From assembly GCA_977030845.1 (NCBI GenBank), contig OZ365115.1, positions 31,248,001 to 31,312,000 of the forward strand: a stretch of 64,000 nt of DNA, read 5' to 3'. Made by a program: the position numbers and the translations under genes. Shown piece by piece: positions 5,821-59,300 of this stretch. The first letter of the stretch is position 1. The number at the start of each line of letters is the position of its first letter. The DNA comes from Fimbriosthenelais zetlandica (lineage: Eukaryota). The notes under the pieces are model-generated. The model was not told the origin of the DNA, searched no databases, and saw only the letters and a list, made by a program, of their open reading frames with translations.

Positions 5821-7418
5821 GGCTGTAGAGAATGCCAGCTGGGCCTTTTGACTAATATTCTGTGATCAGAAAGTGGAAGGGACACACTAGGACCTGATTA
5901 GTGATGGCATGGGAAAATGTGTTCCTTGGTTATCATAAAGTGCTTGTCGATTGGTGTCAAGAAGAATGTCTGATCATGGTTTGTCTGCCATAATATGGCT
6001 GAGGAGAAAGTGTTACATTGAAATACAGGGACTGATTAGAACAGATTTTACTGTGGTTTAAATTCGCCGGGCACAGTAGAATGACATAGAAATGCAGGAG
6101 ATGAATGGGGCTATGTCCTGGACTCATGCAGTTATCCCAGAAATCTACCTCCAACTGCCTGGTAATGAAAAGCTGCTTCAAAAAAAAGCACCACTAACTC
6201 AATGGTTTATCTGACTAGCAAAAAAAGTGATTTTTCATTTTTCAGACGAGCCAGTAGACTGAGCCCAATACAAGTGAGCGACTAGTGGCCACTTGGCTAT
6301 AGGAGCGATAGAGGGAAGAGTTTAATGGGATCATGTTTAGTGTTGACCTCAGCTTAGAAATGTCAGACATTTAAAATTTAAATCCAATGCGGAGAATGAG
6401 TTGAAGCCGAGCCAATGCTTGACAAGGGCTGAGATGTTGGTATTCACAGACCTTTCCTTGCCCTTTTTATGTGATTTTCAGGTGAAATACCGTTTGTATA
6501 TCTGAGACATTGGCAGGGATTATGTTCACCCATACAAGCCGTCCCCAGACGCTCATGGACTGGCAGGATTAATGGTGGTTAAGTACGATTATATTCTACC
6601 ACTTTCTTCATCTAAGTATCTCGGAATCATCTTGGTAGGCCTATATACTCAAATCATTTTCTTCATTTTGATTTTTATCAAATGGATCTTTTTGGACTGA
6701 TTGCTGCTTAAGCAGGAGTATTAAGAAGATCAGTCTTGAGATGGTGCTGGCAGATCCTAGACAAGTACTACTAGTAGCTCTACTGATACTCCACTTCTCG
6801 GGTTACCCCCACCCCGCCCAGCCAATACACCAGCTCCAGCACAAGAAAAAAAACTCATCTCTCTAGAAAAAAAGACAGAGAGAATGCGGCCATTGCTGCT
6901 GCTGAAGTGGCACCGAGACAGTCTGCCCGTGCACCAAGTACTCCCCAGATATATAAGTCAGATATATGAGACGGATATCTCATACTTTCTGTGATACGGT
7001 TTTAGTTCTATAGTCAAGTGTATGGAAGTTAGACTTCATTACCTAGCCTGATTTATAAAGGTGAAATGGAGATCATTAACTAAGACAGTTAATGACATGG
7101 GATTTTATGATTATCAATGATTACACCATTGATAATCAACGACTATCATTGATAATGGCACGATATGACAAAATCAAATATAACTGACCAACATAGGACT
7201 GAAATTTAAATCCAGTTAGAAAAAATAAAATACATTAAATTCATGGCATGGTTTCTGGTAATCATTTTTGTTTCAAGTACCGGTACCTGAAATAAATCCG
7301 AGATTAACCCAGCAAAGGACAGCCAGAAATGACCCTAACAAAAATGAAGGATGATCATACACCATTAATAATGAATTACGACTTAAGGTGTAGTGAGGTA
7401 ACGTTAAGACAGACTTAC

Positions 7419-8144
7419 CGTGGGCGACTGCGGGGGAGAATAGCGGTCCTCCATGGTGTATGAGGCTTCTGACGTCACTGTGAACGACGCTTCAGCTGAG
7501 ACGTTGGACTCGTCGTTGTAGTCGGCTTCATCATGGTACTCCTCCTCATAGTCATGGTGACCGTTGGTCTCCGGTGGACCTGACGTCATCAGGTTATCAA
7601 ACTGTGAATCATACTCACGTCGTTCGTTATCTGACAACGACGTCATGTCCTTTTCGGTTGCGAGTGTGACTTTTTCTGGGAGGTCGTCTTTTTCGACGAC
7701 TGAATTCTCTTCGTCTTCTTCCTCGTCCTCGTCGTCGTCTTCCTCCTCGTCCTCCTCTTGGATTAGATCAGGCTGCGCGTGGATACGACCTTCAGAGACG
7801 TCGTAAGAGCCTTCAAGACCCTCAATGTCATCTGTGGTCAGGGCGCCGCCTAGCAGGTCAATCTGACCGTGGACGTCGTCGTGGGTTGGTTGTGACGTGG
7901 CAGGAAGATTGGAGGAGAAGGGGTCAAAGTCGTCCCCAGTGTCCACTTCTTCAGTGACTTCCCCAAGGTCTATAAGTCCAGTTGTGTGATGGGAGGTTTT
8001 TGTGTTGTTGCTAGCTTCTTGGTTCTGACCAAAGGGGTCACTTCCCTCGAAAGGGTCACTGGGACTGATTGTGTCTGGGGACTCAACTATTTGGGCAAAG
8101 GGATCAAACCCTGTGAAGGAAGCTTTCTGGTCGTTGTCACTGGG
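7419..8144 (-). CDS. Large internal exon (242 codons) of the acidic DPF-motif protein
   Basis: Acceptor ctgcttcctttccag| at 8144, donor ACG|gtaagt at 7419, phase 0-0. Open frame PSDNDQKASFTGFDPFAQ...SDPFEGSDPFGQ...DDFDPFSS...EEDEEEDDDEDEEEDEE...YSPPQSPT. GC and CpG content much higher than flanks. Confidence 0.82.
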
Positions 8145-9077
8145 CTGGAAAGGAAGCAGGCCATCCTCAATTAATATGTGACTATGATTATAGAATAGTG
8201 GGTACAGGGTCCAGGATCCAGGGGGAGGGGGATGGATTTCCCACCTGGTATGGTTATTTCATTATTGAGATTCTTAGTATTGCAATATTACAGAGCCACC
8301 ACTCGTGTGAGGGTTATGCAACTATACATGGATGAGATCCAAGGCTTAAATTGTCTACATTTTAGTACTAGAAGGAATTGAATGCACGACATTGACTCCA
8401 TGCTTTCAAAGGCTATATCACTCTACATATATTCCGCTTCTGTTCAAGGTTTTTCATCAATGATTTTTTATACAGAATTTAAAATCAATTTAACAGAGAT
8501 AAACGATCAACCAATTTACTTGAATCTTTTCCATACTCACCTCCGGTTGATAGGAGTGGACATAGAGTAGATACCAAATAAAAATATACGGCCTGCTACG
8601 TACAAGAAGTAATTTTGGTTTGAAATTTTTCGAAAGAAAGGTATGACTTGATCAGTGGCATAATATAGAGTAAAATGCTCAAAGCCTTTAACTACATACA
8701 AGACAATGTCACAGGGCAAAGTGAACAAACTAAAAAATCTACAAAAGGCAATCCAAACTAATACATTTCAGAAGGATTAAGATTTGTTTTGTGGGTTGAA
8801 GGCAATCCTGAAAGTAGTGGGTGAATTGGTACCTATAAGTACATGTTTGTTTTAGAGTGAAATTCATGTTATTGTGATTTCTAGTATGTGAGCCAAAACA
8901 AAAGAGAGTGCAAATTGTGTGATACTTAAGTTTCTACCATAACAGGGAGGGAGAATTTTTAATTGGGGGGGAAATGAAGAATGAAAATTAAAAGAAAACC
9001 GGGGGAACGTATTCAGCCAATATTGTCATTAATATGGATAATAATGAATGTTAAATCATTAGTAACTTTACCATTAC

Positions 9078-41338: not shown

Positions 41339-41700
41339 ATTCTCTCCTCTCTACTCTCTCTCTCTCTCTCTCTCTCTCAATATTTCTCCTTTCTCCCCAC
41401 TCTTTGCCTCAATTTTCTCCTCTCTCCTCATTCTCTTTCCTTCAATCTTTCTCTTCTCTCCTCACTTTCTTCCCCTCAGTCTGAGTAAGTCTCTCTGTCG
41501 ATATCAATCCCTCGCTCAGTTTCTTCCTTTTCTCTGACTCCCTTCCCATCACTCTTCCTCCCATTTCACTCACTGCCTCTCCTTCCCACCCCCTGTCTCT
41601 GTCTATCAGCCCTTTGTCTGTCTCTCTATAATCTGTCTATCTCTCTCCTACCTCACAATCACCCTTAACTTTCTCTTTTTCGATAGTTATTGTTCTCTCT
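41339..41700 (+). repeat. (CT)n microsatellite and polypyrimidine tract
   Basis: Pure (CT)n 41354-41378 inside a ~360-bp C/T-rich stretch. Confidence 0.9.
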
Positions 41701-46800: not shown

Positions 46801-48691
46801 TATCGTTGGCACATTTTACCGCCAGCTGAGGCAGACTGCAGAAATGTGTCATTTCCTGGTATTCTGCCAGTCTTCTCTCTGTACCAATGATTGGCATTCT
46901 GGCAGACAGATATATCCCAGCCAACTCCCTCCACCCTTCTCAGTCAGAGATGTGAGGTACAGTGAAATAATTCTACGTAGTTTGTAGCAAAAGAATACCT
47001 ATATCAAAAATAAACAAATTTATATGATGAAATGCGATAATTCTATATATTTTAGAAAAGCCCTCCTAGGGTAAGCCCATTCTGCCAAATGGAGTGCTGT
47101 CAAGTTCAAGTGGAGCAATCTGCCAGTAATTTATAGGCGGTATAGCCTTAATATTCGTTGGCACAGTATTAAAAATGTCAACCAAACTTGTAATTTTCTC
47201 TTGACATCTCAGCTACTTCTAACAATAATATAACCTCATATTTCTCCATTCTCTCGCAAACAGACTGTCAACTAATAGCATAGAACTGGCAGACGATATT
47301 ATCCATTCATTTACTTTTTCTTAACACTACAAGTATTTTTGGTCAATACTTAGTTTGGAGTACCTTTCCAAAAAGATGTCAACCACTCACAAGGCATGAG
47401 AACCGCCTCTAGTCAAAACTTTATAGAGCAAGTCTTAGTGAACAATGCCTGTCTGTTTGTTTCCTTAGGTAACGATGATCTTCTAAAATGGTATCACAAA
47501 GACATCTGATTCAGAACAGTCCTCTCTAAAATACCCATTTGTACATTTTGAACCATGAGTCAAGTAGATGGAAAAATATTCAACGAAATGAAAAAAAAAT
47601 TCCATCCCTTTTAACCGGACCAGACTAGATCGTTTTAATTTGATCTTCCATTTAAAGAAAGCAATACATGTACATATGTCTATGTACATTGTACATGGTA
47701 TAATAATGTTAATATCATCAAGCAAAAAACATACATACCTTTTACCAAGCTTAGTTCTCTGCAGGGAATGTCTGAATGGTAATCCAGAAACCCAGTATCT
47801 GGAAAAGTCAATTTTCAATTTTTAGCTTACATTTATGAAGCTTTGACGCGTTCTCATAGTTCTGTATGTATTTTTGCAATGCGATGTTTATTACATTAAG
47901 GTCTAAGCGACATAATATATCAAAGTGGGAGGATTGCTTTACAAAGAATCTGTGGTCAGTCATATGTATAAGAGAAGTCGGTGAATTGGAAAGACTGTCA
48001 ATGAAACTAAAAGAGACTGAACTTGGCATGACAAAAAGGGAATATTAACGAACAAAGAAACACCAGGAAATTGTATAATGACTGCATGCATCACCATAGA
48101 TCTTACATTACCAAGGTCGTAAATGTGCGAGAAATAGAAGCCTGCATCTAGGGGAATTAATTACAGATATTTCTATAAATAGAATGTTCTCTTCCAGTAA
48201 ATTATTTCTGAAAACTAATAAGTGTGTCATGGGACCATTTTAACACGGGTCACTTGGCTCAGTTCCTGTATTAACTTCATCTACAAGCTAACAACTTGTA
48301 TCCTACCAACGAGTATAGAAAGAAGTACTCGTTGTCCTACTCACTGAGGGGAGAGGTGGTACATTAGACTATACTAGTCTGTATAGGCCTTCAGATCTAC
48401 CAAGAGGACAGGATCAGATTGAACATTTGTACTAGTATCATCTGATACAACAATTGTCATCAGGTGTTATACAGCATGTTATATATCAGCATCAGTAAGG
48501 AATATCTATAACGTGAGTTCAAATTGAGTAAATGTTCCCCAAATGGTGTGGTGGGGAATAGGATAGAGCAAGTAGGTCATCCACAGGTCAATGCCACTGT
48601 AAGTTTCAGGATTTGAGGCAAGCATCACATCATCAGTGGGGCTCTGATTTAGGCGGAAATCTAATTCCGTCTCACAAGTAGACCAGAAATC

Positions 48692-49816
48692 ATGGCGGAC
48701 ACAGCGCTTAACAAGAGTCTCCGACAGTTTTTAGAAGAGCGTGGAACGCCATTAGTGTTTGATCTCCTTGAAAAGATAAGGTCAGATGCCAATGAGATCT
48801 TACAGTTTGTACAAGCTACGGATCCAAGATTTAAAGGGCAGATAATGGAGGTTGGAAGTCTGTCTACTGGAGTCTCAGCAGTCCATATTGATGAGTGTGA
48901 CATGCTGCTTATTCTTGAAGTCCCGGGAACTTGGTCCCAGGAAAGGCATTATCCGAATTGTGCAAGATTCCAATTAGACCCCAAAACGACAGCATGGAAG
49001 GATTGTATGACAAAAGATGGCTACCTCCATCCACGTTATGTGGCCGATCTCTTCTATGAGCATGTTTGTCATGCTGTTTCCTCACTTCCAAATCTTAAAA
49101 GCACTAGTGTGAGTGGGGATGGAACAGTGGCCACCACAATCTCCTTTCAGCTTCTTGCCCTGACAGTCAGTATTGACTTGGTCATCGCAATAAAGTGTGT
49201 TGGCTGGCCAGGAACAGCCTCACCAAAGTGGCTTCAGGGAAAAACAAGATGGCCAGGTCCTGATACAGCCATGAGGATTCGTGAGGACGGATTCCACCTG
49301 GTGGCCAAATCAATAGACGGTGGACCCAAATCAACAGAGACCTTATGGCGACTGTCATTCTCTGCTGCCGAGACACTTCTCCTGCTAGATATTGACGACA
49401 ATGACGAAGGTGTGGATGCCGGTGCACGTTATTGTCATAAACAACTCTTGAAAATTCTCAAAACTCTGCGTAAATTCAAATTCACAAATTCGCGACAAAC
49501 CCAAGTAACGCCAATAATCACTTCGTATCATTTCAAAACTCTGTTGCTCCATGAGAGTGTTGCCCATCCTAAGAAAAATGACTGGACCCAGGACAAGCTC
49601 GGAGAACGCTTCCTCTCCGCCATCTCCTCATTCCTAGAGTGTGTCAGAGAAGAAAACCTGCAGCATTTCTTTGTTCCATCAGTGAATCTTTTGGAAGGAC
49701 GCAATTCGAGATCCACTGACAGAGTTCTAGAGGCAATTTTGGAAGATCCAATCAAGTTTTTGAAAGAAATGATGGATTCAAGTCGGGTCAGCGCATTTCA
49801 TAGCGAGTGGAAATAA
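48692..49816 (+). CDS. Mab-21 domain / cGAS-like receptor (cGLR) nucleotidyltransferase, 374 aa, intronless CDS
   Basis: Longest ORF in the window. Motifs in cGAS/Mab-21 order: VGSLSTGVSAVHIDECDML (G55-S56, E68, D70), SIDLV (D162), GWP..A..W, WP, FHLVAK, WRLSFSAAE, LLKILK, SYHFKT, W....LGERF, L.HFFVPSVNLL. Upstream CTAAT branch point (48661) and AAG/TAG tandem acceptor (48676-48681) suggest a 5'UTR intron. AATAAA at 49812, 49886, 49983. Confidence 0.93.
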   Translation: MADTALNKSLRQFLEERGTPLVFDLLEKIRSDANEILQFVQATDPRFKGQIMEVGSLSTGVSAVHIDECDMLLILEVPGTWSQERHYPNCARFQLDPKTTAWKDCMTKDGYLHPRYVADLFYEHVCHAVSSLPNLKSTSVSGDGTVATTISFQLLALTVSIDLVIAIKCVGWPGTASPKWLQGKTRWPGPDTAMRIREDGFHLVAKSIDGGPKSTETLWRLSFSAAETLLLLDIDDNDEGVDAGARYCHKQLLKILKTLRKFKFTNSRQTQVTPIITSYHFKTLLLHESVAHPKKNDWTQDKLGERFLSAISSFLECVREENLQHFFVPSVNLLEGRNSRSTDRVLEAILEDPIKFLKEMMDSSRVSAFHSEWK

Positions 49817-52736
49817 AAGAAATTATGAATTACCTCTACTGCAGACTATAGTAAAATTAACTCATAGACTGATAGTATATTGTTCAATAAAGTAAAACTA
49901 CCTGTATTCACAATTAATCGATTAATGACGCAGCTCAATGTTCAAGAAATGTCTCTTGCTGAATGTAATCAAAGGTTTTAGAAATAAAGTCTATAAATAT
50001 CTGATACATTGAAGTCTGGAATGTTTTCTCTTTATCGAAGACGTATACAAGACCATGTAGATCATTTCTAACTGGAGAAATATAAGTGATCGATGGGTGT
50101 CAGTTGCGAACACTAGTCCATAGAATGAAGTTCAAGCATCAAGTGATCGTAAGGCAAAAATCAATTACAAATTTCCCATATGATCCAGCAGTGTGTGGAT
50201 GTTTGTATATCATGTCCAGACTAATAGATCATTTCTGACGTAAGACTGGAATACGCACTGCCCTTCATCATGCTAGCCAGTTCAAGGGCTTCCAATATAT
50301 CCTATAGATTCACGAAATATTGAGGAAGGAATTCACCATAATCTAGCCGAAATGGTGCAATTCTGAAAAGCCCATTCAAAATATGGCATATATTAGGAAT
50401 TTGGTTTTAACATTCAAACATGATTTTTCTTTATCGAAAGAGGAGGAACCTAGTTCTTAGGGCATGTAAAACACTGAGTTGGCATGGGAGAGGACCGAGG
50501 ATTTCCTGCTCGAGAAAGGAACCCAAACAACAATATTGACATAGGCTTATCCCCATCCCTGGACAAGACTCACAACTGTTTGTCAACTTTACTCCACGGC
50601 AAATATGGGAGAATTGCTGGCTGAGACACGTTTTAGAAATTTCAGTTGAATCGAAAATATCTTCCAAAAATTGACATAATTTAGCCAAAAATGAGGCTAA
50701 TTGACCCCTCTTGTTTATCACTCAAGCAATATCATAATTGTACCATAGCTTACCTATGGATCCACACGCCCACTATTTATATTGATTTCAAGTCATAGAC
50801 GTCACACTATACATTAGATCCTACTTGAGGAGCCCCTATTTTAACATTTGAGAAGATGGTAGATATGTACAGAATGACACCAAGTGTTCTACATCAAAAG
50901 GCCTATACATGTACCGTTATTTACAATGTTATGTGGAAGTAAATAATGGTATAATGCATGCACCTCCGCATATATTATAGAAAGACCCTGGAAGAGTGGG
51001 CCTAGCTTTGTTAATGAAAAGCGTTATAATAGGCTCACAATGAGTACTTATTCTTAAAATTAAATAACCTTGTAATACCATCTAATTCATGGCTGGGTCA
51101 GATGCACTTGGATACACATCCTTGTGTAATATTCTATTTGACCTAAAAACACCTGCATTTGTTCTTTGATATAGCACACAAAAATCTGGTAATATGTAAT
51201 GAACATGCATGCAATGGAGTGATACTGGATACTCATAAATTATACACCAGGAAAAAGAAATCTACTTAACTAGCCGACTCGAGAATAATATTAACCAAAT
51301 CTGTAGGCACTCAAAAGGGAAAGAAATGTCCATTACCGGGTAACTCTAGGAATGATTGACAGACCCAAATAGACAGTAGGCTAAGGCCTCTTCAGAATCC
51401 AATTTCTTTTGTACAGTACCAAACTTGGCAATGATTTGCATGGATGAGAGACTGCAGCTATTAGACAATGAATCATGAGTAGCTCTTACACATTCCTTGC
51501 GAGGGGAGAGACGGAGGGGGAAGGCAGGGCTATATTTAGCTCAGGGCTGTTTATGATGTGCTGTATGTAATTTGGCATAGCGAGACAGAAAAATCAATAA
51601 AACTGTTTTCTTCCAGTTTTACAGGAAGGGACGGGGAGAAGGAGGTGGGCTTAATCGGCCCTTCCCAGGGGCCTATATATATATATGAAGAAACATAAAA
51701 TGTTACAGGGAGTTTTGGGACGGAAATGTCTTAGTGAGCAGCTCTACCCTAAAGCGACTACCTTTGGGACTGACACCAGGTCAACCAGCCCTAGCAATGT
51801 CCTCCTATTGCTAAGTGCCAAGCGAGGGAGCTACCGTACTATTCCCCATCTATTTTTTCAGTTTCACTAGAAATTTTGGCTGATACATGACATGGGGAAT
51901 TCACACCACTCAGACATGACTGATGAGAAACTATACATTGAAAAACATTCTGACTCAGAGGTTAATTGTGTTGTAACTTGTGGCCTACTATCTATGGCCT
52001 GTTGATTTGGGAGGGATGAGTTGTTTTATGGCTTATGACTCCATTGAGTGGATCTTTCACTGGGTAAATGACCTGACATGTCGAGGGAAGGTGATGTGAG
52101 TCATATGTGATCCATGTAGAAAACTCAGAAGTGGATTGGAATAATGACCCACCAGTCATGACTGCCTATTGATCTTGGCACGCATGGCTGTCTGGGTGGG
52201 AATGACTGGACATTGGGCCATCTAATGGAAATCTATCAGAAAATATCGAGGGGCCAGGATCAATAGAGCTATAATATTGCCTATTTTTTTCAGGCCTTCT
52301 TTAAATTTAGCCCATTTACCACTATGGTATTTTTTGCTTTTGTTAAATATCACGATATGAATTGTTAGGCCATATCAAATATTTTATGCCCATTTAATGA
52401 TTTATTAATATTAGATCTAGATTGAAAAGCCTTTTTTCCCTCCTGAACAATACCGGTACCTGATTCAACGAATTATTGTGAGCTGTATAAGAAAACTTTA
52501 TGCAGGAGACAGTTGAATTATGAGCAGAGCCAAAATAGCAATTCACTGACATAGCCCATTTGTCTCTAAAGGCCTAAACGAGTGAAGTGAGACTGAGTCT
52601 GAGACATTGATTGATGGAAAGGAATGGCTCGTGTTTGGGGACACGCTTTTCATCCACGCCGCACTCCTAGAAAACGCAGGCACGTTCATCGGACTAGTAT
52701 GGACAGAGATCTATAGAACTTATTCTCCCAACTCAC

Positions 52737-53380: not shown

Positions 53381-56300
53381 GTAAGTTCCCATTAAAGATA
53401 AAGTATCTAAGATAATGACTGTACCGAAAATATGGCTAAGAAGACTAAAACTGCTGAGAAATCAGCCATGGTTAGAAAGAAAACAATCCGAAACCTCTAT
53501 TATCGCCCAGCGTCGCGCTCTGGAAAGTCAAATTTTAAGCCAAGTTTCCTTTATCTAAACGAATTGTATTGTTGTGCAGATAGACTGTAAGAAGGTTGCA
53601 AAAACGATATTGTCTAATTTGGAAGTAAATGGGGCTTTGGTCAGACATTGGACGGAAGTAATTTCAAAGAAATGTCCCATATATTTGTTAATGTTTTTGC
53701 CACTTCGCCGAAACAACTCTTAGCTGCCACCTTGCGTGAAATGTCAGAACTAAGGTGGATATACCCGTCTGCTGAAAGTAAAACCCTATTTATGTACCCC
53801 CACCGTTGCAGACAATATTGTTGTATGATGACAATCTGTGCTTGCCTACTTTCCTCATAGCATAGGCTTACCGGTAAGCCTACCTTGTGAAGAGTCAGTT
53901 GATAAAGGTGATCCTGCTGTGGTTTCGCCCCCCTCCTCTTGGGGGGGGGGGGGGGGGGGTGTGTGTACCATAGCTTCAGATTGCCACTATGATAAAAAGG
54001 GTATGGCCATATCTCTGTTAAACCATCAATCGCCACATCCGTGGACATTCCTATAGAAATCATTGCTTTTTATTTTTTTTTAAATTTTGTTATACATCTA
54101 TATCAAATGAATTCTCTATTTTAGATAAGGATATCTGCACTTAATGATTCATCTGACGATGATGAAAGTCAGTCAATATCTAAGAGTCGTCCAACGACGA
54201 AGGAGGCCCAGGAGTCGGCTGCTCTCGCTCTCTATAACCGAGCCTTGGATCTCCTCAAACGAGGTGATGAAAATGGGGCTAAAAATACATTCCTTCAACT
54301 ACTGGAAGCTCCTTTCATCAAGAATGTAAGTTTCATAAATATTTTTTAACTGAATTAGATGGGTCTTTTTCACTTTACATATGCTTTTCTTTCTTTATTA
54401 GTTTCTTCTTTTTTTCGTCATTTTTGCAAATAATTATCCTACATGTACCATTATCATTATATCCAGGCTGAACCGTCCACCGAGAGTGAAGTGCTGGTGG
54501 ACCCAGGACTTGTCGTCAAATATTCTTCATACAAGAACCTTGGATCAATGGCTGCCCATCGAGAGGAATATGAAACGGCTATGACTTACTACCTCGAGGT
54601 ATAATATACAACTTTTAGCTTTCATTTTGAACTCAAATCGATCTTTTTTTACAACTCTGAAATCGATCTCGCTGAGATTCTATTTGATGGATATAATATT
54701 ATAGGACGATGTCCTTTTAATCATGCCTTACCATTACTGACTCAATAACGTTACTTATGATTGATTATAAGTTTTGTAATTATTCTTTCTAGGCGGTGAT
54801 GGTAGATTCCAGTGATGTAACAGTGTGGTACAAGATAGGAACCATCGCTAAGAAGCTTCACAACTATCCCTTGGCTCGTCACGCATTTGAACAGGTACAC
54901 CCAAGCCTCCCCACTCAAATTACTTTATCAAAACTGAACTGGCATTTTTGAACTCCACATTGTAATTGATTTATTTTATTTAAAAATTATTGTGTTTTTC
55001 AGGGTTTAGTCTGCCAGCCTCGTCACTGGCCCTGTCTGGACAACGTTATCACTGTTTTGTATGCTCTATACAACTATGATGGTAATTATACTGTTCCCAA
55101 CCACTATCATTTTAGCTGTGAAAATAAAATTATTAGCGATTCCAAGCTGAACCCTAAAGTTAATTGTTTTAATTAATTAAATTCTTTTTCAGCCTGCCTT
55201 GTGTATATTGCACGCGCCCTTGAGAGAGATCCTGGCTACATCAAAGGTATCTCATTCATGGAGAAAATCTTGGAGGAACAACCATCCTTGAGGAGACATA
55301 TGGGTCATCATTTTACCTCATGGTAAGAAAATGTCTTTCTCTGTACTCCACATTGATTTTTGAAACCAGATGAATCAACAGTACCTCCACAAATGCGAAT
55401 ATTTCACCCATGATTTATTTGATTCTTTAAACTCTTCTATTTTTTAGTGACCAGAGCATTTTCACAAACGAAGTTGACCAGGATGAAGCAGACGAGGTAA
55501 GTCAAATTTTCAGAAGTGTCAAATTATTTTATTTTCAACATTTGTGGATGGATTTAGTATAAGGTATACCGTATATCAAATGATACTATCTCAATTTCCT
55601 TTTATTAAACCAGTACATCGATGAGGCTGTAGCAATGAGGAAAAAGAAGCAAGAGCTGTGTCAGCCCAAGGAAAGACCAACTGTCAAATTTACCCAACCT
55701 CTCACTGCATTCACGTAAGCCTGACACTTCATTCCTATGCCTTTGATCAAAAGAACATTTTCATTGGATATCATTTAACTATTTTAGATATGAGGGATGG
55801 ACTTGGCTAAATCTATCTTGTTTTTTTTACAGCTGGCACAAGCTGGGATCTTGCTTTATGTCCCTCTACGACCACATTGCATCATCAGAACCCCCTATTG
55901 TAAGTTCCCTGATTTTGATTTGTTTTTATTGAAGAACACATTGTACATAACCGATCCCGCCATGCGGCGTCATTACATAATATTTTACATAATGTCTTAC
56001 TTATTTTAACATTTAAAATTTCAGACTTACAGCTGTAAAGTCGATTTGAAGGAGAATTTAAAACTACAAACAGAAGCTGAAGAATCACCTACTGCTCCTG
56101 AAGTTATCACTGATGTCCCTGCTTCATCAACCACCACTCCCTCCACCCCTCCCACCACCACTTCTACCTCCACCACCACCACTTCTACCTCCACCACCAC
56201 CACCACCACTACTACCACCGCCACTCCTGCTCTGGAATCATCTCAGATTCAGGCAACAGAAGAAGCTTCTCTCTTACCTACTGAAACAGCAAACAAAGTG

Positions 56301-59300
56301 CCTGAGAGTGAGAAAGAAAAGGAAGGTGGAACTGGTGAAATATCTGATGTGGACCACATGCAAGTCGAGACGAGCAAAATGGAAAATGGTATGGGAACTC
56401 CCTTTCAGATATATATGGAGCATGCAAAATCAGATTCACTTTCTTAATCTAAAAAGGTTATTTTAATGAAAATGAATTATGTTTTCAGTCTTGACAACGA
56501 GTGAGACAAGGGAAAGAGAGATCTCCAAACGTGGACCAAAAAGAAAAAAGTTCATAGCTGATAATAGTGAGAAGCGAAGATCTGCTCGAGTAAGTAATAT
56601 TGAATTTATTTATCAGCACTGTTTAAAATAGTCGAATACGCCAAATCACTTTCTCTATCTTGTCCATTGAACACAACATTTCTTATAGCTTATCACGTGG
56701 CGTACTTGGTTTTCTTTAGGTTCGAAACACTGGCAGCAAACCAGTAGAAGACCAGTTCAAGATACAAGAACTGCTTGTCAATCTCCTTCCTACTTCAATG
56801 ACGTAAGTTTCCAACTTATCCAAATAATCCATTCAGTGTTTGAATGTAAGCCCCTTCAAATCATGGTCAGAGGCGGATTCAAAAATGTTTCCCTTCCATT
56901 CAGCATTCGCCATACCTCACTTTCTCATGGCTGGACAGTGGGCAGTGGGAGGAGAAGGAAGGAGGGGGTGGGTGTGGTCAAGTCTAAATCATCCACACGC
57001 TACCTCCCCGTGTTGGGGAGTGGCGGGGGTCCAGTTGGGGTCCAATCCCGGGTTTTAGCTTGCAACATTGTGAAACTTTGGTCATGCCTCGCCGCTTCTG
57101 AAAAAACGTGAGGAGGGGGGTGGGCGGGGGGGAGGTTCAAAGCTACTAGGGTCCGGATCTTGGCTTTTCTTCTGGCTTGGCAGTGGAAGGTGCTTGTGTG
57201 GTGGTGGGATAAGGGAGGGTTCAATCTCAAGTCTGGGTCTTAGCTTTTAAGCCTGTGAAACTGGTCACGCCTCACTGATTCTGAAACAAAGGAGGTGGCG
57301 GGGTGGTTGGGGTTCAAATCTAGGTCAGGGTCATAGCTTTTACCTCATGTGAAGTCTGACCTCCGCTGGCTGACCAATAGGGTGTTAGGGTTATGGGATT
57401 AGTATAGGGGAGGAGGTTAGGGTTAGTAGAGGGGGTTAGGGTTAGTAGAGGGGATTAGGGTTAGTTATATGTGACTCTTGGGGTGGGCGTCAGGCGAGTG
57501 GCTATATAATTATGTACATTGATTGATTGCCTGTGATTGGTGGGGGACATACCTCTTGATTGAAAGCTGTCATCAGAACTGATGTAGTACGAAAATGAGT
57601 TAATTTAATAATCTGTGTCAGACACAGTATACACTATTATAAGTAATAGAAACTGTCATACCGAAAAGATTCCATGTACCAACAACAAGTTCAGTAAGGG
57701 TCTATTCAATGGGATCCCTGTGCATAATACATACCCTTCAATTCTTATTGAAAAATCAATATTCTCAGGCAAGTCCGTGTGGAGGATGAAGGGACAGAAA
57801 GCTCCCAGGAGGAACCAATGGATGTAACGTCTCAGGAGAACAGTACCCAGCACACATCCCAGGACTCGGGGACAGACGGGGCGGAGGACGGGGCTTCACG
57901 GGTGACTGAACTCAGAGACACCGAGCAAACCGAGGTGCTCGACTTCCTAGAGAAACACCAAAACAACTCAGGCATCATCGACCTGCTCAATGAGTACCTC
58001 ATTATACTGTCACAGAGAGCTCATCTCTCATGGTAAGTTTTTATATCTAAGATATCCTTTTTTATTAATTTAATTGATTTACATGAAATTTCATTTGATC
58101 TTCTAACATAAAAATAATGATTTTTTGTTGGTATTTGCGATAGGTATAGCCTTTTGAGTCTGATATAGGATGTTGAGGATTTTGTTACTAAAATTCTATA
58201 TGAAATTTAGTTCAATCTAAGCAAATATTTGTTTCTACAAACTAGCTTTTGCCTTCGTTTTCTTGCAGGCCAGAGGGTTTAGCTCAGATCTATATTAAAT
58301 GTTATACAAGACTTCACAAGCATATACAATACCCTGGTTATCTTTGGTAAGTATGTTTATCATTTCATTTGTGCTTCTACTGCAAATGTTTTGTTATTTG
58401 TAAATATTCTGGGCTGAATAGAGATATTTATATTTATACACTGGTAGCATTCTTGAAACACACTGATGATAAATTTTTGTTTTAATTGGTATTGCATTAA
58501 CGTTCTTTATTAATTTGTCTTCTTGCAGCAAAGATTCCTCTCATGAAAGGATTAGAAATATGTCTAAGGTAAGGTGGAGAAATGAACCCAGTATCTGTCT
58601 CAGACAGTTCTTCATATATAAAATGTATTTCAATGAGAATTATCCTTAACCTTTACTAAAATTAAAAGTGAATTGATCTTGATTTTCAGATGAATCTAGT
58701 CCATGCTGAATTGAAAGTGGATCGCTGGGTTGGTACCAAGTCTAGGGCCTCTCCACCCCGACGGTAAGTCCTTGGTTACTGTATAAATTTAAAAATTTCC
58801 AAGTACCATGTTTAAATACTTTTTATGATTTTAACCTTGTGTATTTCTGTACATCAGGTCTGGAGGGGGTAGCCAGGGGCTGGGATCTAACTTTGCTGGG
58901 CCTACTTTCCGTTCAGACCTGGTCTATCTGGAAGGTGTAAGTCAATGTCAGGACATCTTTGACGACGAATGGATCAACTTTGTCATCAGAGGTGAAAAAA
59001 CCTACATTATATTTAGCATTCAAATGAAAATTACAATTAACAGTCGAATCATTTTTATCTGTAATGAAAATAATGGTTATTTTACCCTGAATTGTGTCAC
59101 TAATATGTATACATGCTCAATTATAATGTATATTTTATTTTTGCTCATTCAGTTTTCTGGATGAGTGCGAAGTTCCGGATGTTGGAAGGGAAAACTGCTG
59201 AATCTATCACTGATTATGAATGTGTAAGTTATATGGGATATAGTTGTAAAGGAAAACTCTTATATGAAAATTATTAAAAGGACATTACACTGATTTGGTG

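Follow-up and report, generated by a model that had tools for sequence, protein, structure and literature searches.

A minimal cGAS-like receptor gene with a complete catalytic set in Fimbriosthenelais zetlandica

The closest described receptors

cGAS-like receptors (cGLRs) are pattern-recognition receptors of animals. The family is large, and for most of its members neither ligand nor product is known. The catalogue of Li et al. covers 583 species and lists 3,020 cGLRs that have putative active sites; some bivalve genomes hold over 200, and 140 of the cGLRs were screened (Li et al., 2023, PMC9980059). Here we analyse a candidate cGLR gene of Fimbriosthenelais zetlandica. It lies in a stretch of 64,000 nucleotides of contig OZ365115.1 (assembly GCA_977030845.1), which was analysed as a whole and is called the window below; positions without a contig label are those of the window. 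An earlier note on this DNA had reported an open reading frame (ORF) of 374 amino acids at exactly 48692-49816 on the forward strand, and had read it as an active cGLR. The ORF is present as described, running from ATG to TAA, and its product is referred to as the query:

48692..49816 (+): cGLR coding sequence, 374 amino acids, single exon, complete including the stop codon (ORF, Pfam, HMMER)

The nearest characterised relative is the coral protein Sp-cGLR1 of Stylophora pistillata (PDB 8GJY; UniProt A0A2B4RP11), a synthase of 3'3'-cUA (3'3'-cyclic UMP-AMP) that is activated by double-stranded RNA (dsRNA) (PMC9980059). Like Sp-cGLR1, the query is a minimal protein of about 375 residues consisting of a Mab-21 core and a C-terminal domain, with intact GS, [DE]x[DE] and D motifs and no zinc thumb. 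Neither protein has Q or T before the GS, this residue being K in Sp-cGLR1 and V in the query. The two are only about 25-26% identical, and Sp-cGLR1 is placed in a different clade of the tree described below. At this distance the ligand and product of the query cannot be predicted, as the earlier note had said of what it called an uncharacterised cGLR. A close Stylophora relative of Sp-cGLR1, P0053, has an isoelectric point (pI) of 9.5, while that of the query is 6.3.

Vertebrate cGAS (among others mouse 4O6A and 4K9B and human 6CT9) has its catalytic residues and its WRLSF, LKxxK and SYHxKT motifs placed identically to those of the query. It differs in being 20-24% identical, in belonging to a separate clade, and in having T where the query has V54. 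The query also lacks the unstructured basic N-terminus, the zinc-ligand pattern and the basic spine helix of vertebrate cGAS.

The developmental proteins MAB21L1 and MAB21L2 (PDB 5EOG/5EOM) share with the query the two-domain fold, a length of about 360 residues and an intronless gene, and MAB21L1 gives the top raw sequence match in the PDB. The earlier note had stated that these proteins lack a complete catalytic set, and the alignments agree. Unlike the query, human MAB21L1 (5EOG) and the orthologue in this genome have no GS loop (N-G or D-A instead), have E-x-E as the second motif, and have Q in the D162 column.

The closest named sequences are mollusc proteins from Liolophura (XP_064605946.1), Mercenaria (XP_053391764.1) and Mytilus (CAC5386221.1 and XP_052060768.1). 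They share with the query a clade with 100% support, the protein length and the V-G-S, E-x-D and D motifs. They differ in being only 31-40% identical to it, and their names are automatic annotations (cGAS-like receptor 1, MB21D1 or mab-21-like at NCBI). A search of parts of the supplementary tables of PMC9980059 did not find the accessions of the clade, and no biochemical characterisation of the named mollusc members was found. The clade thus appears to be uncharacterised.

Catalytic residues, fold and descent

Both Pfam families expected of a cGLR, PF03281 and PF20266, are matched by the query, as the earlier note had proposed to check. The E values, 5e-19 for Mab-21 and 2e-24 for Mab-21_C, mean that the family match is not due to chance. 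The domains and catalytic residues are as follows:

48890..49384 (+): Mab-21 nucleotidyltransferase core, PF03281, residues 67-231 (Pfam, E 5.2e-19)
49433..49738 (+): Mab-21 C-terminal helical domain (helix-hairpin-helix/H2TH-like), PF20266, residues 248-349 (Pfam, E 2.3e-24)
48854..48859 (+): GS loop, nucleotide-binding, codons G55-S56, preceded by V54 (aligns to mouse cGAS G198-S199)
48893..48901 (+): first two metal-binding acidic residues, codons E68-C69-D70, on strand 68-75 (align to mouse cGAS E211/D213)
49175..49177 (+): third catalytic acidic residue, codon D162, on strand 157-169 (aligns to mouse cGAS D307)

The alignments between the query and cGAS were made with HMMER and cover residues 26-335 of the query. 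Equivalent residues were counted along the alignment to chain 4O6A_A of mouse cGAS, which begins at residue 146 in the numbering of the entry. The mouse residues listed above belong to the established catalytic set, corresponding to human G212/S213, E225/D227/D319, R376, K414 and S435-K439. The WRLSF, LKxxK and SYHxKT motifs of the query align with their cGAS counterparts. The cGAS-type catalytic set claimed in the earlier note is therefore borne out, with G55, S56, E68, D70, D162, R220, K257 and S278-T283 all at the positions it gave.

The published pattern for cGLRs is h[QT]GS-X8-20-[DE]h[DE]h-X50-90-h[DE]h (Li et al., 2023, PMC9980059). The core spacing of the query falls within it: G55-S56 is followed by 11 residues, then E68-C-D70-M, then 89 residues, and then I-D162-L. 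The V-G-S, E-x-D and D columns are conserved across the clade of the query, and so are R220, K257 and S-Y-H-x-K, in members that are 31-46% identical.

An AlphaFold2 model generated from an alignment of 54 sequences has a mean predicted local distance difference test (pLDDT) score of 91.8 and a predicted template modelling (pTM) score of 0.90. Its secondary structure shows that the fold of the nucleotidyltransferase core begins before the Pfam match, at strand 49-54. In the model the GS follows this strand, and E68/D70 and D162 are placed on strands, which is the canonical nucleotidyltransferase arrangement. Foldseek comparison gave TM scores of 0.80-0.86 against DNA-bound mouse cGAS, 0.70-0.75 against the Sp-cGLR1 crystal structure and 0.67-0.72 against MAB21L1. 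The model is thus closer to cGAS, with which the earlier note had proposed to compare it, than to MAB21L1. Among the reviewed UniProt models the best match is Sp-cGLR1 (TM 0.81, E 1.4e-26). Predicted structural homology to cGLR and CD-NTase (cGAS/DncV-like nucleotidyltransferase) enzymes, a feature by which cGLRs are recognised, is therefore present.

A search of PDB chains by sequence (phmmer, from HMMER) gave human MAB21L1 (2.9e-27), Sp-cGLR1 (8GJY, 1.4e-26) and mouse cGAS (1.6e-23) as the best matches among solved structures. A word-indexed protein homology search returned no relative at E <= 0.001, while an exhaustive HMMER search returned 1,275. The two nearest relatives are 46% and 44% identical (383 and 380 residues, from unannotated ENA assemblies), with the same start and the same length as the query. 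The next nearest are the proteins already described, from Mercenaria, from the chiton Liolophura (named 'cGAS-like receptor 1') and from Mytilus (named 'MB21D1' and 'mab-21-like').

A maximum-likelihood tree of 105 sequences, with support from the Shimodaira-Hasegawa-like approximate likelihood ratio test (SH-aLRT), places the query within a clade of 15 sequences with 100% support, the named members of which are all mollusc proteins. The MAB21L1/2 clade is separate, and holds the genome's own orthologue at 100% support. This orthologue (L002, contig C37) is a frame of 402 residues matching Pfam Mab-21 with 158 bits, with NG, E-x-E and Q in the columns where the query has GS, E-x-D and D162. 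The vertebrate cGAS clade, identified by the names of its members, is also separate from that of the query. A tree constrained to unite the query with MAB21L1/2 is worse by 61 log-likelihood units and is rejected (approximately unbiased (AU) test, p 0.008). The earlier note had said that a position inside the MAB21L1/2 clade would count against its reading, and the query lies outside. Of the refuting outcomes named in that note, none of those open to computation was observed. Identity as a MAB21L1/2 developmental protein is rejected on the separate clades and the AU test, on the retention of GS and D162, and on an identity of 29% to the orthologue.

Compared with its 44%-identical orthologue (L036), the query shows a proportion of nonsynonymous differences (pN) of 0.38 and of synonymous differences (pS) of 0.77. 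The synonymous sites are saturated, and a dN/dS ratio can therefore not be quantified. At the level of sequence, a pN below a saturated pS indicates long-term purifying selection on the query.

Several members of the clade (P0005, P0006, P0008, P0012 and others) are found on Logan contigs of 1.2-1.8 kb, each with a full ORF of 360-380 residues. These short contigs look like assembled transcripts; if they are, relatives of the gene are expressed in other species.

On these grounds the query is a minimal cGLR: a Mab-21 nucleotidyltransferase core and a C-terminal helical domain, no appended domains, and a complete catalytic set. The gene is present once, has long been conserved and does not belong to the developmental lineage of MAB21L1/2.

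The gene, its surroundings and the rest of the genome

Counting from start codons, no other ORF in the window reaches 200 residues. Positions -3 and +4 around the ATG are A and G, respectively, and the frame is bounded by the following features:

48662..48664 (+): in-frame stop codon TAA, 9 codons before the ATG at 48692, to which it restricts the start of the ORF
49886..49891 (+): first AATAAA polyadenylation-type signal, 70 nucleotides past the stop codon (from sequence only)
49983..49988 (+): second AATAAA signal, 167 nucleotides past the stop codon (from sequence only)

Across the 447 Mb of the genome the locus occurs once, and the sequence on either side of it is not repeated. Pfam assigned none of 20 further open frames in the window to a family, and no neighbouring gene could be recognised among them.

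A gene that is both intronless and isolated in this way could be an intact but silent or decaying copy, for example a retrocopy, with no current function. This was considered and rejected as very improbable. The frame is open over 374 codons in surroundings of 39-41% G+C; relatives at 44-46% identity share its length and start; and pN is well below the saturated pS. No poly-A tract or flanking repeat was seen at this single-copy locus. In addition, most Mab-21 genes here likewise consist of one long ORF, the MAB21 orthologue among them, so that the intronless state is the norm for the family in this genome.

Other features of the window are minor. The second-largest open frame, at 7407-8258 (-), has 284 residues from stop to stop and 180 from a GTG; it occurs once in the genome and has no Pfam match. 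At 41341-41482, some 7 kb upstream of the cGLR gene, lie a TC-rich microsatellite and a 34-nucleotide tandem repeat (4 copies). An ACC-triplet tract at 56130-56224 (+), with a perfect 21-nucleotide repeat (2.5 copies), lies within a frame of 145 residues at 56010-56444, and may be either coding, as a low-complexity exon, or simply a microsatellite. A tandem 19-mer at 57410-57465 (2.9 copies, 94% matches) includes GGGTTAGGGTTAG, an interstitial telomere-like motif.

The genome contains at least 20 Mab-21 open frames (loci L002-L035), most of them single long ORFs of 430-880 residues, a length that implies extra regions beside the Mab-21 domain. A column-by-column alignment shows that GS, [DE]x[DE] and the third D are kept in about 15 of 21 Mab-21 frames, which makes the query one of many candidate active cGLRs in this genome. 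Some of the family members are clustered. A near-identical tandem pair is found at C11:3799599-3806665, with a third copy at C11:4494499-4495272, and a convergent pair at C22:1263980-1270518.

A STING receptor in the same genome is a further feature by which a cGLR is recognised. There is no STING gene in the window, as the earlier note had observed. The genome search that it proposed found two loci, one on C10 at 31.92 Mb and the other on C22 at 3.37 Mb (labels L013-L016, L037 and L038), with exons that match the ligand-binding domain of STING (PF15009) and score higher than the curated threshold:

C10:31923129-31923621 (-): STING locus, two adjacent PF15009 exons (profile match)
C22:3366564-3368707 (-): STING locus, two adjacent PF15009 exons (profile match)

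The same PF15009 search gave no match in 14 control genomes. One of the exon matches on C10 contains a TAG.

Proposed function and the ligand question

On the basis of these observations, we hypothesise that the query is a ligand-gated synthase of a cyclic dinucleotide that acts in an innate response, and give this a probability of roughly 0.6. A ligand would switch on the enzyme, and the switched-on enzyme would join two nucleoside triphosphates to form a cyclic dinucleotide. This product would be read by one or both of the STING proteins of the genome, and the reading would start an innate immune response.

Several points weigh against this proposal. An intact motif is no guarantee of activity. 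The shrimp proteins LvMab21-1/2/3 are related to cGAS and are antiviral, yet they make no cyclic GMP-AMP (cGAMP) and bind neither double-stranded DNA (dsDNA) nor dsRNA; they act with IKK-epsilon, activating it without cGAMP (PMC12928593). The geometry of the metal site in the query was judged from the placement of secondary structure and the alignment alone. Members of the clade have pI values between 5.3 and 9.2, so that charge is a weak guide to the ligand. Finally, the strict h[QT]GS pattern finds nothing in the query, where V54 replaces the Q or T, and only a relaxed pattern passes.

With regard to this last point, the residue before the GS is K in the active Sp-cGLR1, A in one bird cGAS, and V both throughout the clade of the query and in another group of paralogues. 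Given the active enzyme with K, the bird cGAS with A and the retention of V across the clade, this position is not truly defining. We treat the Q or T as a preference and V54 as no bar to membership of the cGLRs, and the position may have a bearing on the choice of base.

The shrimp proteins suggest a second reading, in which the query is a non-enzymatic Mab-21 scaffold whose acidic residues are incidental, and which binds a kinase or other protein much as LvMab21-1/2/3 do with IKK-epsilon. The query also lacks the basic ligand surface of known sensors, in keeping with a scaffold. Against this, GS, E-x-D, the third D, R220, K257 and S-Y-H-x-K have all been kept within the clade, and it is difficult to account for their retention across such diverged sequences unless nucleotide binding and catalysis have been under selection. 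Moreover, these catalytic residues were lost in the known non-enzymatic lineage MAB21L1/2, as they were in the non-enzymatic MID49/51. A scaffold role therefore seems improbable.

Charge bears on the question of the ligand. The query has a pI of 6.3 and a net charge of -4, and residues 1-49 have a net charge of -1. The segment in the region of the spine helix is approximately neutral (net charge about 0), whereas in mouse cGAS it is strongly basic, with about eight net positive charges by hand count from the alignments. In cGAS the zinc ligands of the thumb are one His and three Cys. At the corresponding site the query has an acidic loop:

49385..49429 (+): residues 232-246, an acidic loop with six D/E at the site of the vertebrate cGAS zinc thumb (aligned to mouse cGAS)

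This loop does not show the zinc-ligand pattern; residues 232-250 have a net charge of -4, and the pLDDT is lower here, at 77-81. The query thus shows neither the zinc-thumb ligands nor the basic DNA-binding spine and platform that mark a vertebrate-type cGAS.

The dsDNA- and dsRNA-sensing cGLRs of the published panel all have a pI above 8.5, and the acidic 'auto-active' cGLRs have been proposed to bind a ligand other than nucleic acid (PMC9980059). Given the near-neutral charge and the lack of a zinc thumb and a basic spine helix, we consider cGAS-like binding of long dsDNA or dsRNA less likely than activation by some other ligand, auto-activity or transcriptional control. The earlier note had read the protein as an active cGLR and had described invertebrate cGLRs as sensing nucleic acids, which implies such a ligand. 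The Pfam matches, the fold and the tree uphold its identity as a cGLR, and the charge, the zinc thumb and the spine helix make a nucleic-acid ligand doubtful. The argument from charge is suggestive only.

This bears directly on whether the query could be a classical nucleic-acid sensor, responding to dsRNA like Sp-cGLR1 and Drosophila cGLR1, or to dsDNA like oyster cGLR1, and making a cyclic dinucleotide for STING. We consider this unlikely, given a pI well below that of the panel, the acidic loop in place of zinc ligands and the neutral spine helix. It is true that the relative nearest in both sequence and fold among characterised proteins is activated by dsRNA (PMC9980059), and that some members of the clade are basic, with a pI of 8.6-9.2. 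The model of the query also superposes best on cGAS in its DNA-bound form. AlphaFold often yields active-like conformations, and for this reason the fit is no evidence for the ligand.

A bolder proposal is that the query and its relatives are an old, mostly single-copy lophotrochozoan clade (in animals of mollusc or annelid type) of minimal cGLRs that has swapped the nucleic-acid surface for a neutral or acidic one, with no zinc thumb, an acidic loop and a V before the GS. The ligand would then be something other than nucleic acid (a cationic metabolite, a peptide or a protein), and the product perhaps an unusual nucleotide. We offer this tentatively, as a possibility with the odds against it.

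The gene is a fairly ordinary addition to the known cGLRs, of which there are about 15 in this genome and thousands in the catalogue. As one more entry among more than 3,000 predicted enzymes it otherwise changes no current view. It is nevertheless a clean candidate for biochemistry, being short, intronless and single-copy, with an intact active site and two STING genes in the same genome. Its near-neutral charge groups it with those cGLRs for which nucleic-acid sensing is improbable, the least understood part of the family. If the clade has indeed swapped its surface, it would offer a defined and conserved way into the cGLR class of 'unknown ligand'.
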